Below the pieces are notes generated by a model. That model worked only from the letters and a program-made list of their open reading frames with translations. It did no database searches and was not told the origin of the DNA. 64,000 nt of DNA, taken from assembly GCF_048593235.1 (NCBI RefSeq), contig NC_133618.1:498623675-498687674 (forward strand), in the 5' to 3' direction. This DNA is from Sminthopsis crassicaudata (taxonomy: Eukaryota). A program made the position numbers and the translations under genes. Shown one piece after another: positions 9,368-21,499 of the stretch (its first letter is position 1; the number at the start of each line of letters is the position of its first letter).

Positions 9368-12300
9368 CAGACTCTGAGCTAGATGAGTCAACTAAAAATG
9401 CTCACATGATCTTGGGTTGCACTGACAGAAGCAGTGTCCACAAAGAGGGAGTATAAGGCCCATTACACTTGGCCAGCATATATTGTATTATATTCAGTTC
9501 TGGGCACCACATTCTAGGAATGGCATTAACTAGACCAGGGAATTCTTCTCTTTACATTACAAACCCCTGGAGCAATAGCCTCTAGACCTCTTCTCAAAAT
9601 AAGGTTGTTAAATGTGTAGAAGGAAAGACATAAGAATCACAAAGGAAATCAATTATACAGAAATATAATTATCAATTCCAGATGAAGAACTTCTGAACTA
9701 GAGAATATCAAAAGGAGGACCACAAAGTAAAGGGACTTGAAAATATGTCACAAAAGGACTTGTTTAAAGACCTGGAGATATTTAACCTGGAAAAAAAGAA
9801 ACTTAGAGGGGACATGATAGCTGTTTTTGGCTTGAGTAACTTGGTCTCAGAGGGCAAGATAAGGAGCAGTGAGTCAAAGATAATGGTCAGCAGATTATAG
9901 TCCAATATAAGCAAAACACTCAACAATAAGAATTAATATAAGATAAAAATAAATGGAATGGGCTGTGTCAGGAACAGATGAGTTTCTGAGGAATAAATGG
10001 ATGCTTTTCAAATGTCATTGAAACTTATTAGTAACACAGCAGAAGAGATTCCTATTCAGGTATGAATTAAATGACCTTTAGCACCTGTAATCTCTAGCTT
10101 CTCTCTAGAGTCTGCTGCTCAGTAAAAATCCCACGCCCATCTCAGAATTCTGGAGCTGGACAAATGGCTGAGGAGGCTTGAATTCCCTGAAATGCCCTCC
10201 CTTTTGTTACCTGTTGCAACATCAGCTCTGTCATCTCCAATTTCTTATGCAGCTCCTCTATCTCCATCTGTGTAGCTGCCTTCTCTGCCACCAGCACCCG
10301 GAGCTTCTCTTCTAGCTCTGAGTGTTGCTGCTTCAGCTCCTCACTGCTCTTGCTGGGACAGGCATCAGTGTGGGGTAAAGATAGGAAATATTAGAGAGGT
10401 GTGTCAGGAGGACCAATGAGAACCACAGCACCTTCCACAACCTCTCCAAAGATTTAAGAGAATCTGAAAGCTTGAGGAGACTATTAGCATGTATTCCTTT
10501 ATTTCACAAATTAGCAAATTTAGGCCCAAACTTTTTAAATAGGGGGCCAGTTCACTGTCCCTCAGACTGTTGGAGGGCCAGACTATAGTAAAAACAAAAC
10601 CTCACACTGCCTCGCCCCTCAGCCCATTTGCCATAACCCAGCGGGCTGTATAAACATCCTTAGCAGGCTGCATCTGGCCCGCGGGCCGTAGTTTGAGAAC
10701 CTCTGGACAGGAGCTCAAGCTCATGCTAGAACTCGAATAGGGCTCCTAAGCCTAGAGCAATTTGGAACACAAGTGTTTTTTGACTCTAACAAGGTTTCAG
10801 TCAGTCTTCCTCATAAGAACTCACCCTAATCCATAGCCCCTATTCACTTCTGGACTGAGATCCCCTAATCTTTTCGATCTGTTACCCCACTAACCTGTGC
10901 TTATATAATTCCAGTTTGAGAGCATCCCGTTCTTTAGTTAATTCCTTGTTATACTGCAAGAAGAGTGAAAAGTCACATAACAGAAAAGAGCAATAACTCA
11001 GGAAATAATATTTAATCATGTTGATAATAAAACTTCATATTAAAAAGTACTTAATTAAAAAGTACTTAATATTTCCCAGAACATTTCCATACCCATGATC
11101 TCACTAGAAACTTATAACAACCCAGTAATGCAAATGGGATCAGATATTATACCCATTTTATAGTCTCTTTTCCCATGGTCCAAAGATAGGTAGTACCCTG
11201 CTGAGAATTGCATCTAAGTTGATTGATACCTAAACCTAGTGCTTTTTCCAAAATAACACAACAGGTATTGCCGACTCATCCAAGGACCTATTTCTAATAA
11301 GTTACACAGCATGAACATGAGACTCACACCACTATTAAGGAGTAAGAATAAGAGTTACTGTGAGGTGAGCTCACCCTATCAGTTTGCTTCTGTTGTGTGG
11401 ACACTGAAGAAAGTGTCCGCTCCAACTCCCCAACACGTTGCCGGGAAGATTGCAGGCGACTGGCCAACTCTTCTGACTCCCCTAAAATGAGATAGGGTAG
11501 GAATAAGAGCAAGGTTCCAATTTCAAGAGTGTAAGATAAGAAAAATACATGAGCAGGGGGACAGGATGGGACTACAGAATGGAAAAGGATGGCAGAATCA
11601 AGGAATTGCATTATCAAGATAAGGGACTTTTAGGATAGCATTTAGTAAGGACAATAACTCGCTTCTACCTGATTTCTGGCGAGCAGCCTGCTGTGTGTGG
11701 GCTAGAGCTGCTTGTAGATCTGTCTTCTCTGACACAAGAATCCCAATGGTCTGGATATGAACCTTTAAAAAGAACAGAAGAGTAAGAGGAGAATTTCTAT
11801 GGGACAGCAGGAAATTTGCTTTATCACATCCACTTACCTGTAGCTGTTCCCTTAGGGCTCCCTGCTCCTTGGCAAATTTCTGCTCAAATTCTTTCTTCTC
11901 CTGTGAAAGAAAGGAGATGTTACCAGTAATATAAATGTGTTGTCAAAGGAAACCCCCATCATAGGGGGCAGATGGCAAGTCTGCCAAGCTACAACAGGTT
12001 CTAATCTAAGGCACCTGTACAAGGTGCTGTCATTTTACCTTCTCCAATTGATCCAGGGCATCCTGGTTCTGTTGTTTCTGTGGGAAGAGCAAAAACAAGG
12101 TGTTGTTCTAAGAAGTATCCATATTCTCCCAGCNNNNNNNNNNNNNNNNNNNNNNNNNNNNNNNNNNNNNNNNNNNNNNNNNNNNNNNNNNNNNNNNNNN
12201 NNNNNNNNNNNNNNNNNNNNNNNNNNNNNNNNNNNNNNNNNNNNNNNNNNNNNNNNNNNNNNNNNNNNNNNNNNNNNNNNNAAATAAGTTTCCCAGGGCC

Positions 12301-19400: not shown

Positions 19401-21150
19401 TACGGGGTCATGATCCAGGCAAATACTTCCCCAGGGGAGTATAATTTTACAAAAAGTTGGGCTCAAGAAGAAAGCATATTATGGCTGAGAGATCAAACAG
19501 CTAAGTTTGGATTCCAACTTTGCCCAAAGGCTATCTAGGTGCTGAGAAATGATTCACAGCTCGGATGTTCAGTTTCTTTAACAAGTCATACTTCCGTGGT
19601 GCTTCAAGATTTACAAAGCCTGTTCCTCAGAACTAGTTGGTTTTAAAAGAAGGGGAAATGATTTGCCCAGATATTAATTGTGAGAATCTGGACTCTCAGG
19701 TGTCCTGGCTCTAAGACTTCTGCCACCCCTTAAAAGTAACTTCTCTGACAACCGTAATAGCATTCCTTCCGTTTTAAGTCCTCTCCATTCCCTGGTAGAT
19801 AAGCACATTTTATCCCAGAGGAGAGTGAATGAAAAACAAGAGTGTGTGGAGGAAAAGTTTGAAGGAAAAAATCATGGACCTTTCAAAAGAGTTGCAATCT
19901 GGGCAGACACAATCCTCTCATTCGTTTTTCAAGCATGTTTTGAATCTTTGAGAGCATAAAACAAGGAAGTGGATAAATTTAAGAGATTACTGTCATCATT
20001 ATCATCTTCCGTGTTAGGTCTCAGAATGTGATGCAGTCATTCCTGTTCTTTTAGGCTTCCTCTGAAAGTGTGTTTCAAAGAGACTCAAGAATTTTCCCAG
20101 AGGTAGTAATTTTAAAAATCCTGTCCCTTTTCCCAGGCCAGAAGGTTATAATGACAGCTTGGAAAGGGGGATGGTTACCTAATCTCATTCTAAATTCTCC
20201 CCATGAGTTACTCAGAGGGAAAAAATTATCTATTCCCCTCCCATAATATTATCCTACATATGTGTGGGTCCTTCCACCCATCCCTTCCCCCAAACTACCC
20301 CACCATCCCTAACTCTGGACCCCCAGTCTGGATCTGAGGCAAAGGGAATCCCCTTCCCTCCTCCCTTCCCCATCATAGAGGGGAGGAAGAGTGTAGAACA
20401 GGCTGGAAGAGGTTTGGGAAGGGCCCCGAGGAAGTCCGGGACGGCGTCGGATTCCCACAGAGCGGGCGGGGCAGGCCTAACAGCTGGCTTGCCCAAGCCT
20501 TCACCTTGGGGCCCTCCTGGGGTATCGGGGTTTGGGGAGAGTGGGGGTGGGGAGCTACAGGAGCGGCGGGACAAGGAGGGGGGCATCTCCCTCCGGCACC
20601 AGCGGTGAAGGGGGGGCCGGAGGTGAGGCCTTTCCGGGAGGCCAACAGCTGGGCCTGACGTCACGGCCCGAGCCCGGGCCCGGGGAGAGGGTGTCACGGG
20701 CCCAAAGTCACCAAGGGGGCGGCGGGGGAGGGGCGTGGGGCGTCAGGGTTTTGAGGAAGTCCTGGGGGGGGTTCGAGGCGCGGACCTGTGAGGTCAGGGA
20801 CGGAGACTACGAGACTGAAGCCGAGGACCCTGAGGGGATCGAGGAGAGGGAAGGGGCGGGAGAGGAGGGCGCTTCAGAGACAGGCGAAGGAAACCCGAAG
20901 AGGCTGAGGGGGACGATCAGAAGGGATCCGGAAGGGGATCTGTGAGGATCTGAGAGAACCACCGAGAGGCTGGATCGGGGAGGGGGTCTGTCAGGGCCCA
21001 GACGGCGAGAAAGGAAGGGGCGGGGCCGAGCCCGCGAGTGTAGGGGCCGCCTCAAGAGCGATTACCTTCTTTTTGGCCGCGGCCAATTTGCTCTGCCGGG
21101 TCTCGTCCGCCATCCCGAGCCGGGGAGGGGGAAGGCGGGGGGGGCCACAT
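3620..21150 (-). CDS. GOLGA2: Golgin subfamily A member 2 (GM130), whole gene, 27 coding exons
   Basis: 27 GT-AG exons in continuous phase give 3063 nt from the ATG at 21113 (1020 aa). N-terminus [16 protein letters not shown], long coiled coil, C-terminal GRASP65-binding ...[16 protein letters not shown]. Confidence 0.97.
3958..4126 (-). CDS. GOLGA2: GOLGA2 exon 26
   Basis: [20 protein letters not shown]...; AG and GT flanks. Confidence 0.93.
4274..4380 (-). CDS. GOLGA2: GOLGA2 exon 25
   Basis: [35 protein letters not shown]. Confidence 0.95.
4611..4713 (-). CDS. GOLGA2: GOLGA2 exon 24
   Basis: [34 protein letters not shown]. Confidence 0.95.
4800..5006 (-). CDS. GOLGA2: GOLGA2 exon 23
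   Basis: [29 protein letters not shown]...AMEKLQ. Confidence 0.93.
5230..5318 (-). CDS. GOLGA2: GOLGA2 exon 22
   Basis: [29 protein letters not shown]. Confidence 0.92.
5541..5687 (+). mobile_element. WSINE1-like CORE-SINE
   Basis: tRNA-like head gcagctaggtggcacagtggatagagc, CORE ctgggcaagtcacttaac, A tail. Confidence 0.85.
5738..5813 (-). CDS. GOLGA2: GOLGA2 exon 21
   Basis: [25 protein letters not shown]. Confidence 0.92.
5894..6118 (-). CDS. GOLGA2: GOLGA2 exon 20
   Basis: [32 protein letters not shown]...ELLQTQ. Confidence 0.95.
6665..6778 (-). CDS. GOLGA2: GOLGA2 exon 19
   Basis: [38 protein letters not shown]. Confidence 0.95.
7228..7565 (-). CDS. GOLGA2: GOLGA2 exon 18
   Basis: [25 protein letters not shown]...LQNGFVKL. 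Confidence 0.95.
8470..8557 (-). CDS. GOLGA2: GOLGA2 exon 17
   Basis: [29 protein letters not shown]. Confidence 0.93.
8696..8803 (-). CDS. GOLGA2: GOLGA2 exon 16
   Basis: [36 protein letters not shown]. Confidence 0.93.
8898..8987 (-). CDS. GOLGA2: GOLGA2 exon 15
   Basis: [30 protein letters not shown]. Confidence 0.93.
9181..9362 (+). repeat. Purine-rich tract ending in a (GA)n microsatellite
   Basis: Nearly pure A/G tract, with an uninterrupted GA repeat over roughly the last 70 bp. Confidence 0.95.
9400..9990 (+). mobile_element. L3/CR1 3' fragment, interrupted by a probable old DNA-transposon remnant (~9540-9690)
   Basis: CR1-type motifs cagttctgggcaccacatt and ttaacctggaaaaaaagaaacttagaggggacatgatagctg; boundaries approximate. 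Confidence 0.55.
10211..10352 (-). CDS. GOLGA2: GOLGA2 exon 14
   Basis: [24 protein letters not shown]...MTELMLQQ. Confidence 0.94.
10526..10705 (+). mobile_element. OC1 (OposCharlie1)-like hAT MITE, left terminus eroded
   Basis: caaactttttaaatagggggccagttcactgtccctcagactgttggagggcc ... ggcccgcgggccgtagtttgagaacctctg (hAT-Charlie terminal sequence). Confidence 0.7.
10895..10953 (-). CDS. GOLGA2: GOLGA2 exon 13
   Basis: [19 protein letters not shown]. Confidence 0.94.
11375..11481 (-). CDS. GOLGA2: GOLGA2 exon 12
   Basis: [35 protein letters not shown]. Confidence 0.94.
11669..11762 (-). CDS. GOLGA2: GOLGA2 exon 11
   Basis: [31 protein letters not shown]. Confidence 0.95.
11838..11900 (-). 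CDS. GOLGA2: GOLGA2 exon 10
   Basis: [21 protein letters not shown]. Confidence 0.93.
12039..12077 (-). CDS. GOLGA2: GOLGA2 exon 9
   Basis: [13 protein letters not shown]; cccacag acceptor, gtaaaa donor. Confidence 0.9.
12134..12281. other. Assembly gap (148 N)
   Basis: N run in GOLGA2 intron 8; exons 8 and 9 join in frame, so no coding exon appears to be missing. Confidence 1.
12992..13072 (-). CDS. GOLGA2: GOLGA2 exon 8 (81 nt, symmetric)
   Basis: [27 protein letters not shown]. Confidence 0.94.
13246..13305 (-). CDS. GOLGA2: GOLGA2 exon 7
   Basis: [20 protein letters not shown]. Confidence 0.93.
13401..13458 (+). repeat. (CA)n microsatellite
   Basis: About 29 CA units. Confidence 0.97.
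13628..13790 (+). mobile_element. Old hAT-Charlie-type MITE fragment
   Basis: cagaggttcttagtttggagtccat ... ttctgagaaggggtctat; a related copy lies at ~52760-52920. Confidence 0.45.
14314..14377 (-). CDS. GOLGA2: GOLGA2 exon 6
   Basis: [21 protein letters not shown]. Confidence 0.94.
14493..14536 (-). CDS. GOLGA2: GOLGA2 exon 5
   Basis: [14 protein letters not shown](K); 44 nt, phase matches exon 6. Confidence 0.88.
14858..14974 (-). CDS. GOLGA2: GOLGA2 exon 4
   Basis: [39 protein letters not shown]; divergent but phase 0/0 and similar to human TPKDNAA...SMAASQ. Confidence 0.82.
15717..15788 (+). repeat. 72-bp direct repeat, copy 1
   Basis: 70/72 identical to 17741-17812. Confidence 0.92.
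17741..17812 (+). repeat. 72-bp direct repeat, copy 2
   Basis: 70/72 identical to 15717-15788. Confidence 0.92.
18566..18646 (-). CDS. GOLGA2: GOLGA2 exon 3 (81-nt cassette exon)
   Basis: cttgtag|[27 protein letters not shown]|gtgag; nearly identical to the human alternative exon. Confidence 0.9.
19245..19367 (-). CDS. GOLGA2: GOLGA2 exon 2
   Basis: [41 protein letters not shown]; contains the SP site equivalent to the mitotic Cdk1 site and the basic NLS. Confidence 0.95.
21066..21150 (-). CDS. GOLGA2: GOLGA2 exon 1, coding part
   Basis: ATG 21113: [16 protein letters not shown]|gtaat. The upstream ATG at 21150 gives MWPP... but is 37 nt away, so out of frame by 1. Confidence 0.9.
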
Positions 21151-21437
21151 CACCGTGATCCCGGCAACCACCGCGGCATTCCATCCAGCAGCCACCGCGC
21201 CGCTCCCGCTCCTCCCATAGGGAGGATGAAGGGCGGGGTCGGACAGCGCCGCGCATCCCAGCGTCTGCGCCTGCGCCGATTTCCAGTACTCGCGCGCACG
21301 TCGTCCAGCCCCGCCCACGACGCTACTTGGCTCCCGCATTTCTATTCCTTCGAATTACTCCTGACTTGCGCGGGCTGTCCTTGCTCCTTGCGCTCGTCCT
21401 GGACCGGGAGTGAGCCTCGGCCCGCCCGCTGGCAGCC

Positions 21438-21499
21438 CTGGAGTCCCACTCGCTGCAGAAACCCTCGGGAGGGGAGCCTAGGACCCCGGGCCCCCGGAG
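21438..21499 (+). CDS. SWI5: SWI5 coding exon 1 (putative CTG start)
   Basis: gcagccCTGG context; (M)ESHSLQKPSGGEPRTPGPR(R)|gtgcga, similar to human ...RGPRTPGLRR; in-frame TGA at 21411 and no in-frame ATG. Confidence 0.7.

Follow-up and report, generated by a model that had tools for sequence, protein, structure and literature searches.

The stretch of Sminthopsis crassicaudata (dunnart) DNA analyzed here, which we refer to as the window, is 64,000 nucleotides long and contains the gene for SWI5 lying head-to-head with GOLGA2. SWI5-SFR1 is a conserved accessory factor that stabilizes RAD51 filaments. The exons of SWI5 were treated separately, with foreign proteins aligned to the window by tblastn, and the following features were obtained for the two genes.

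21066-21113, minus strand: first coding exon of GOLGA2, with its ATG at 21113-21111, head-to-head with SWI5
21438-21499, plus strand: predicted coding part of SWI5 exon 1, 62 nt, (M/L)ESHSLQKPSGGEPRTPGPR plus AG, with the donor gt at 21500
22079-22127, plus strand: SWI5 exon 2, 49 nt, (R)ARLGLPKRHSAAFRSP
28340-28461, plus strand: SWI5 exon 3, 122 nt, coiled-coil region
30983-31077, plus strand: SWI5 exon 4, 95 nt, Swi5 domain core GYVVSELEDHISLLHEYNDIKDVGQMLMGKL, whose homologues carry Pfam PF07061
35427-35491, plus strand: coding part of SWI5 exon 5, 65 nt including the TAA at 35489-35491

The NCBI wombat SWI5 protein (P0001) matched the window in five exons over residues 1-130, and the splice sites read in the window sequence were AG/GT throughout. 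Exons 3-5 were identical to those of the NCBI Sminthopsis model (P0002) and 90-100% identical to wombat SWI5. As marks of the SWI5/Sae3 family we took the Swi5 domain, an N-terminal coiled coil, and the conserved C-terminal tail ...YPEF.LD...; PF07061 was present on all homologue hits and the synteny with GOLGA2 was conserved, placing the gene in this family. Intron 1 contains a block ...GTGGGCGCCTAATAAATGCTTGT... (~21630-21665) that is conserved in all three of the marsupials compared below, includes AATAAA, and is reminiscent of an ancient MIR-type SINE core; intron 3 contains an (AC)n microsatellite (~29640-29700), visible as a THTHTH run in translations. The runs of N at 1402-1532 and 12134-12281 are assembly gaps or masked stretches.

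An earlier, sequence-only reading of this DNA had claimed that the frame of exons 2-5 runs into an exon 1 that has no ATG and is closed by a TGA at 21411. Re-reading the window gave the same result, with the following features in the SWI5 frame.

21411-21413, plus strand: in-frame TGA, closing the SWI5 frame 9 codons 5' of the CTG at 21438
21429-21431, plus strand: another in-frame CTG, less favorably placed (C at -3); as a possible minor start, it would lengthen the protein by 3 residues
21438-21440, plus strand: proposed CUG initiation codon, context gcagccCTGg

After the TGA the exon 1 frame reads ASARPLAA-LESHSLQKPSGGEPRTPGPR plus AG and is followed by the donor gt at 21500. ATG was absent from this frame, from every frame between 21340 and 21499, and also from exon 2. 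The CTG at 21438 had been described as lying in the context gcagccCTGG, and G was seen at both -3 and +4. Counted from this CTG the exon lengths total 393 nt, i.e., 130 codons plus a stop, in agreement with the exactly 130 residues claimed earlier. The first in-frame ATG had been placed near the end of exon 3, where its use would lose much of the coiled coil; we located it at 28454, which is the 39th codon of exon 3 and residue 76 of the protein. The first AUG of any frame on the exon 1-2-3 mRNA was at 28368 in exon 3, out of frame and opening an ORF of 14 codons. By a rough estimate, the chance of one well-placed CTG in a GC-rich open stretch of 29 codons is ~10-20%. Because a lone CTG in a good context is thus not improbable by chance, we put the weight on cross-species conservation.

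These AUG positions raise the alternative that exon 1 is untranslated and that translation starts at the AUG at 28454 (Met76), yielding a 55-residue product with little beyond the Swi5 C-terminal domain. The S. pombe Swi5 protein is 85 residues long. Short Swi5 proteins also exist in mammals, e.g., the functional 89-residue mouse form (PMC2954829), and the AUG at 28454 is the sole in-frame AUG on the exon 1-2-3 mRNA; however, amniotes share 75 conserved in-frame codons 5' of Met76. Protein models from marsupials, eutherians, platypus, and turtles have, all in one frame, an exon 1 ending in P-R-T/P-P-G-L-R-R, an exon 2 with ...AFRSP, and an exon 3 starting with P.PKSGQ. The sequence 5' of Met76 is coding, and therefore a start upstream of exon 2 is required. 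Use of Met76 is also opposed by the eutherian proteins, which have LISEGY and no Met at the position of the marsupial Met76, by the out-of-frame AUG at 28368, which comes first, and by the deletion of most of the SFR1-binding coiled coil that it would entail. We regard initiation at Met76 as very improbable.

We compared the DNA of exon 1 in the window with that of eight other therians, whose loci (L001-L008) were reached via database proteins. Two are marsupials, the devil (L001) and Dromiciops (L002), and six are eutherians: Pteropus (bat, L003), Choloepus (sloth, L004), Trichechus (manatee, L005), Heterocephalus (naked mole-rat, L006), Phodopus (hamster, L007), and Lepus (hare, L008). The codon homologous to that at 21438 was CTG in eight of the nine genomes (window and L001-L007) and ATG in the hare, where it was read as DNA (L008:1201). 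Between this codon and the splice donor all nine genomes had exactly 62 nt, with no indels, and the block CC[C/A]TGGA was invariant in all nine. Each of the eight CTGs had a purine at -3 and G at +4; conservation of the CTG and its Kozak context across mammals, which the sequence-only reading had singled out as a check, was thus borne out. The hare ATG had C at -3, and a rabbit model had Leu at the position of the hare's ATG. A macaque model, P0029 (...ALDPLAPLNPLIRGPRIPGLRR), gave a gap-free alignment of 21 residues with Leu at the position of the CTG, as in the human peptide given in the earlier reading.

Given that Met stands at this codon in the hare and in the wombat model, the CTG at 21438 might be taken for a sequencing or assembly error or for a recent mutation of an ATG. 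The cross-species DNA refuted this idea, as CTG was present in seven other independently assembled genomes; furthermore, the NCBI Sminthopsis model avoids the site, and the Gracilinanus and Trichosurus models read Leu at this codon. The probability that remains for an error or recent mutation is negligible. The NCBI wombat model is complete at 130 aa and has M exactly at the codon homologous to the CTG, with its CDS starting 354 nt from the GOLGA2 start as compared with 353 nt for the Dromiciops CTG. Because the same pipeline calls other marsupials partial, the wombat codon, judged from the model and not from DNA, is very probably ATG. Met at the CTG codon also appears in 130-residue Ensembl-derived UniProt entries for cow, cat, lynx, lion, and meerkat. 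We rejected these as evidence for ATG because read-through models (NCBI and Ensembl) from the same species give Leu, as in the Leu and Met pairs from Lynx canadensis (P0037 and P0171, respectively) and the Bos hybrid (P0115 and P0163, respectively); most likely the Met in such entries is a CTG displayed as Met. Some pipelines have thus already placed the SWI5 start at the CTG codon, seemingly without comment.

Upstream of the codon, in-frame stops were found at the following distances.

Sloth (Choloepus): in-frame stop 8 codons 5' of the codon
Hamster (Phodopus): in-frame stop 8 codons 5' of the codon
Dunnart (window): in-frame stop 9 codons 5' of the codon
Bat (Pteropus): in-frame stop 13 codons 5' of the codon

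No in-frame ATG was found between the upstream stop and the CTG in the eight genomes checked, and the stop-to-CTG interval of the sloth contained no further near-cognate codon. The TGA at 21411 was CGA in both devil and Dromiciops. Indels 5' of the CTG measured 12 and 13 nt among the marsupials, because of which the frame in this region of dunnart and devil is unlike that of Dromiciops, and 11 and 2 nt among the eutherians. For codons 2-20 the mean pairwise differences at codon positions 1, 2, and 3 were 0.32, 0.22, and 0.39, respectively, which is the order expected for coding sequence; the signal is modest, as the exon 1 peptide is fast-evolving. Of the five eutherian pairs compared, three had more synonymous than nonsynonymous changes and a fourth had equal numbers; synonymous changes were not in excess in the Heterocephalus-Lepus pair or in most of the pairs involving a marsupial. 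That the third base of the CTG does not vary carries no significance when taken alone, since 5 of 20 third positions were invariant. The second residue was acidic throughout (Glu in the marsupials, Asp in eutherians and in platypus), which would fit both a need for G at +4 and a Met-Asp or Met-Glu N-terminus. No conserved hairpin 3' of the CUG was supported (RNAalifold consensus -9.7 kcal/mol, covariation term ~0). The sequence-only reading had held that the CUG start is conserved between marsupials and eutherians, and at the level of sequence the comparison upholds this, with CTG in eight of nine genomes, an invariant context, upstream stops, and frame breaks. The sequence properties expected of a conserved non-AUG start of a main ORF were thus found at SWI5: the predicted mRNA has no upstream in-frame AUG, a near-cognate codon is conserved together with its Kozak context, a coding signature begins at that codon (with stops and frame breaks 5' of it and none 3'), and AUG replaces it in a lineage (hare by DNA, wombat by model).

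A different near-cognate codon might instead serve as the start, either the CTG at 21429 in dasyurids or a CUG in the boreoeutherian YLADLRG stretch, and the product would then be slightly longer. The CTG at 21429 is in frame, lies 3' of the TGA, would be met first in scanning, and is present in the devil; but it has a pyrimidine at -3 and is unconserved, being TCG in Dromiciops and TGG (W in the model) in Gracilinanus. Boreoeutherian models are alike in frame for ~14 codons 5' of the CTG (YLADLRGRSPAPA), a similarity indicating that some eutherians may start further 5'; after a TAA, Pteropus shows two CTGs in frame, and Mustela and Microcebus have ATGs in the YLADLRG stretch. However, the stops in sloth and hamster exclude the upstream eutherian stretch and, with the stop located directly before the boreoeutherian-similar stretch in Pteropus, argue against general coding there. 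The upstream region, moreover, has indels that are not multiples of three, and only the codon at 21438 is universal, and it is at this codon that the hare has ATG. We consider it quite unlikely that another near-cognate codon is the start of SWI5 in place of the codon at 21438; some eutherians may also use upstream CUGs.

In the hamster the CUG exon lies at L007:1418-1479, and the product from that CUG would be ~134 aa long, exceeding the 121 aa of the larger mouse cDNA product discussed below; the NCBI hamster model omits this exon. The platypus model P0092 is partial, with ALDSP at the position of the CTG and a shorter exon 1 peptide. Turtle models P0153 and P0157 have an ATG ~45 codons 5' of the conserved RR and contain GLRGRS. 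Carnivore models (Lynx, Callorhinus) have the same six residues in frame 5' of the CTG; in most other boreoeutherians the motif is shorter, LRGRS. The upstream ATG of the turtles points to loss, in mammals, of an ancestral AUG start, a scenario that we offer as speculation.

Two features lie between the GOLGA2 ATG and the proposed start of SWI5.

21226-21228, plus strand: out-of-frame ATG, context gggaggATGa with A at -3; GTG in devil and Dromiciops
21340-21437, plus strand: predicted 5' leader of SWI5, with no ATG in any frame; its 5' end is approximate

GOLGA2 (Pfam GM130_C) was the head-to-head neighbor of SWI5 in all eight fetched DNA loci and, by gene table, in three loci more. The portion of the window from 20 to 22 kb is a CpG island with 59-63% G+C. 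The GOLGA2 ATG and the SWI5 CTG are 325 bp apart in the window and ~340-375 bp apart in most of the therians examined. Dunnart, devil, and Dromiciops differ very little over the ~190 bp nearest GOLGA2, and this near-identity suggests that GOLGA2 and SWI5 share a bidirectional promoter. We place the probable TSS near 21340 from the start of foreign models, namely the partial Dromiciops model and a similar Gracilinanus model. The Dromiciops partial model starts at L002:1501, which is 15 nt past the in-frame stop and not directly at the stop. The Trichosurus partial model extends much further 5', possibly as a result of unstranded reads from GOLGA2. The ATG at 21226 is specific to the dunnart. 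A long ORF starting from it overlaps exon 1 of SWI5 in a different frame and, were it transcribed, would act as an overlapping upstream ORF. The ATG matters only if the TSS lies upstream of it, in which case the AUG would intercept most scanning ribosomes and compete strongly with the CUG.

According to the sequence-only reading, annotators that accept only ATG would mis-annotate SWI5, and we found many models that are partial, divergent, or exon-skipping. The NCBI models labeled "partial", in which no start had been identified, comprise, outside the eutherians, those of Dromiciops, Gracilinanus, Trichosurus, Petaurus, devil, and platypus and, among eutherians, include those of Pteropus, Rhinolophus, Hipposideros, hippopotamus, naked mole-rat, Chinese pangolin, two Lynx species, manatee, Przewalski's horse, Dipodomys, Budorcas, and Nannospalax. 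The N-terminal extensions in other species' SWI5 models were mutually unrelated. In the NCBI partial model of the devil (P0003), exons 1-2 are in a shifted frame and exon 3 is skipped, whereby the frame of the Swi5 domain is restored; it represents either an exon-3-skipped transcript or a forced model. For the dunnart, the NCBI model makes use of an additional feature of the window.

21877-22005, plus strand: alternative ATG-started segment in intron 1, used by the NCBI Sminthopsis crassicaudata model P0002

Model P0002 (136 aa) starts at the ATG at 21877, splices from 22005 directly to exon 3, thereby skipping exon 2, and matches the window residue for residue. As an RNA-supported model with an exact match, it lends some weight to the alternative that a different first exon with an in-frame ATG makes the functional protein, the CTG exon being a minor exon or an untranslated 5' exon. 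The segment is unconserved even among marsupials, however, as in Dromiciops the ATG is replaced by ACG and the donor is lost, and in the devil an indel shifts the frame; and the exon 2 that P0002 skips encodes a peptide kept from marsupials to turtles. We regard the P0002 start as probably an annotation artefact of the requirement for ATG, or else a lineage-specific minor isoform. Alternative ATG first exons also occur in the mouse, for which Swi5 cDNAs encoding 89 and 121 aa have been cloned (Akamatsu & Jasin, PLoS Genet 2010, PMC2954829). These cDNAs complement Swi5-/- cells, which favors a functional role for such first exons, but the endogenous mouse protein runs larger than either AUG-started cDNA product, and a non-AUG initiation codon was offered, among other reasons, for the size gap (PMC2954829). 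That work thus dealt with the same gene and raised a non-AUG start; its isoforms differ from the one described here in having ATG alternative first exons, and the CUG exon went unidentified there (PMC2954829). Another alternative first exon is carried by hominine and other eutherian models; yet the ATG-started N-termini are unrelated across species, as opposed to the conserved exon 1 tail PRTPGLRR. Taking both sides together, we think it unlikely that an alternative ATG first exon, and not the CTG exon, provides the start of the functional protein. The eutherian alternative exon (xGEGxAGPGPRSLET...GGRR; P0030, P0033, P0036, and P0149) begins with ATG in hominines, but in tiger, dingo, and squirrel models with GTG, displayed as V; xGEGxAGPGPRSLET was not located between -400 and +1500 nt around the CTG in any fetched locus.

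Later Swi5 biochemistry used the 89-aa mouse form (PMC5291256), which does not have the N-terminal region described here for SWI5. In our search of the SWI5/C9orf119 literature, no paper found named a CUG start, the nearest statement being the remark by Akamatsu and Jasin (PMC2954829).

Use of a near-cognate codon as the only start of a main ORF has a counterpart in another gene. The main ORF of EIF4G2 (DAP5/NAT1) starts only at a conserved GUG, which is proven experimentally and annotated. SWI5 resembles EIF4G2 in having a main ORF without a usable AUG and a single well-placed near-cognate codon, conserved in mammals, from which the only full-length product would arise; it differs in that its codon is CUG and not GUG, and in that the case for SWI5 is comparative. 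Also comparable are the CUG-initiated N-terminal extensions of AUG-started proteins such as MYC, FGF2, and PTEN-L, in which a downstream AUG gives the principal functional protein. Conserved non-AUG extensions were reportedly found through comparative genomics by Ivanov and coworkers in 2011. SWI5 shares with extensions of this type a conserved in-frame region 5' of the first AUG, a near-cognate codon in a Kozak context, and AUG in single lineages. Unlike them, SWI5 would have its main protein, as opposed to an additional isoform, made from the CUG, because a start at the AUG at residue 76 would lose conserved sequence and most of the coiled coil.

From these comparisons, and with the size of the endogenous mouse protein as a published experimental pointer, we conclude that SWI5 translation very probably begins at the CTG at 21438, which would also be its main start. 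The explanation that we consider probable is that the dunnart SWI5 mRNA arises from a CpG-island promoter shared with GOLGA2, carries a leader without AUG, and is translated from the CUG at 21438 into a protein of 130 residues. SWI5 would then be a conserved non-AUG start of a main ORF, a kind of start that is already known and of which SWI5 is a new case. We propose the following sequence of events. The canonical SWI5 mRNA would be made from a bidirectional CpG-island promoter common to SWI5 and GOLGA2 and would have a short, AUG-less leader, on which scanning 43S complexes would start with Met-tRNAi at the CUG at 21438, in its near-optimal Kozak context. Decoding by initiator Met-tRNA is established for CUG starts elsewhere. 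In the 130-residue product, exons 1-2 would supply a short N-terminal tail, followed by the coiled coil and the Swi5 domain. Any ribosomes bypassing this CUG would next encounter, in exon 3, a weak AUG that is out of frame and after it the in-frame AUG at residue 76; they would be largely wasted or would yield a truncated protein lacking most of the coiled coil as well as the N-terminal third, which is conserved. The CUG start would be common to therian mammals, and probably to the platypus too, with single lineages having switched the CUG to AUG, as the hare would have done and apparently the wombat. Beyond the dunnart, we lean, if only slightly, toward the view that in all mammals the canonical SWI5 mRNA is without an AUG start and that the native subunit of this RAD51 mediator comes solely from one conserved CUG. 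AUG-started SWI5 isoforms may coexist with it or may dominate in some tissues.

A CUG start would have practical consequences both for annotation and for studies of SWI5. If the native start is the CUG, many SWI5 database entries have the wrong N-terminus, among them the "partial" models, those with unrelated extensions, and the exon-2-skipping P0002, and the SWI5 locus would offer a clean test case for ATG-only annotation pipelines. The size gap reported in 2010 between endogenous and recombinant mouse Swi5 would be simply explained. Endogenous SWI5 would be ~130 aa long and would begin with Met-Asp or Met-Glu, making it a likely NatB substrate, and it would possess a conserved N-terminal stretch of ~40 residues that the 89-aa mouse construct of PMC5291256 lacks. 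In evolutionary terms, an ancestral upstream AUG would have been kept in sauropsids and lost in mammals. CUG starts are generally less efficient than AUG starts and are sensitive to start-codon stringency and to stress. If SWI5 does start at the CUG, its dosage would depend on how stringently start codons are selected (eIF1/eIF5), and we speculate that translational control through the CUG start may provide a route for dosage control of a recombination factor.
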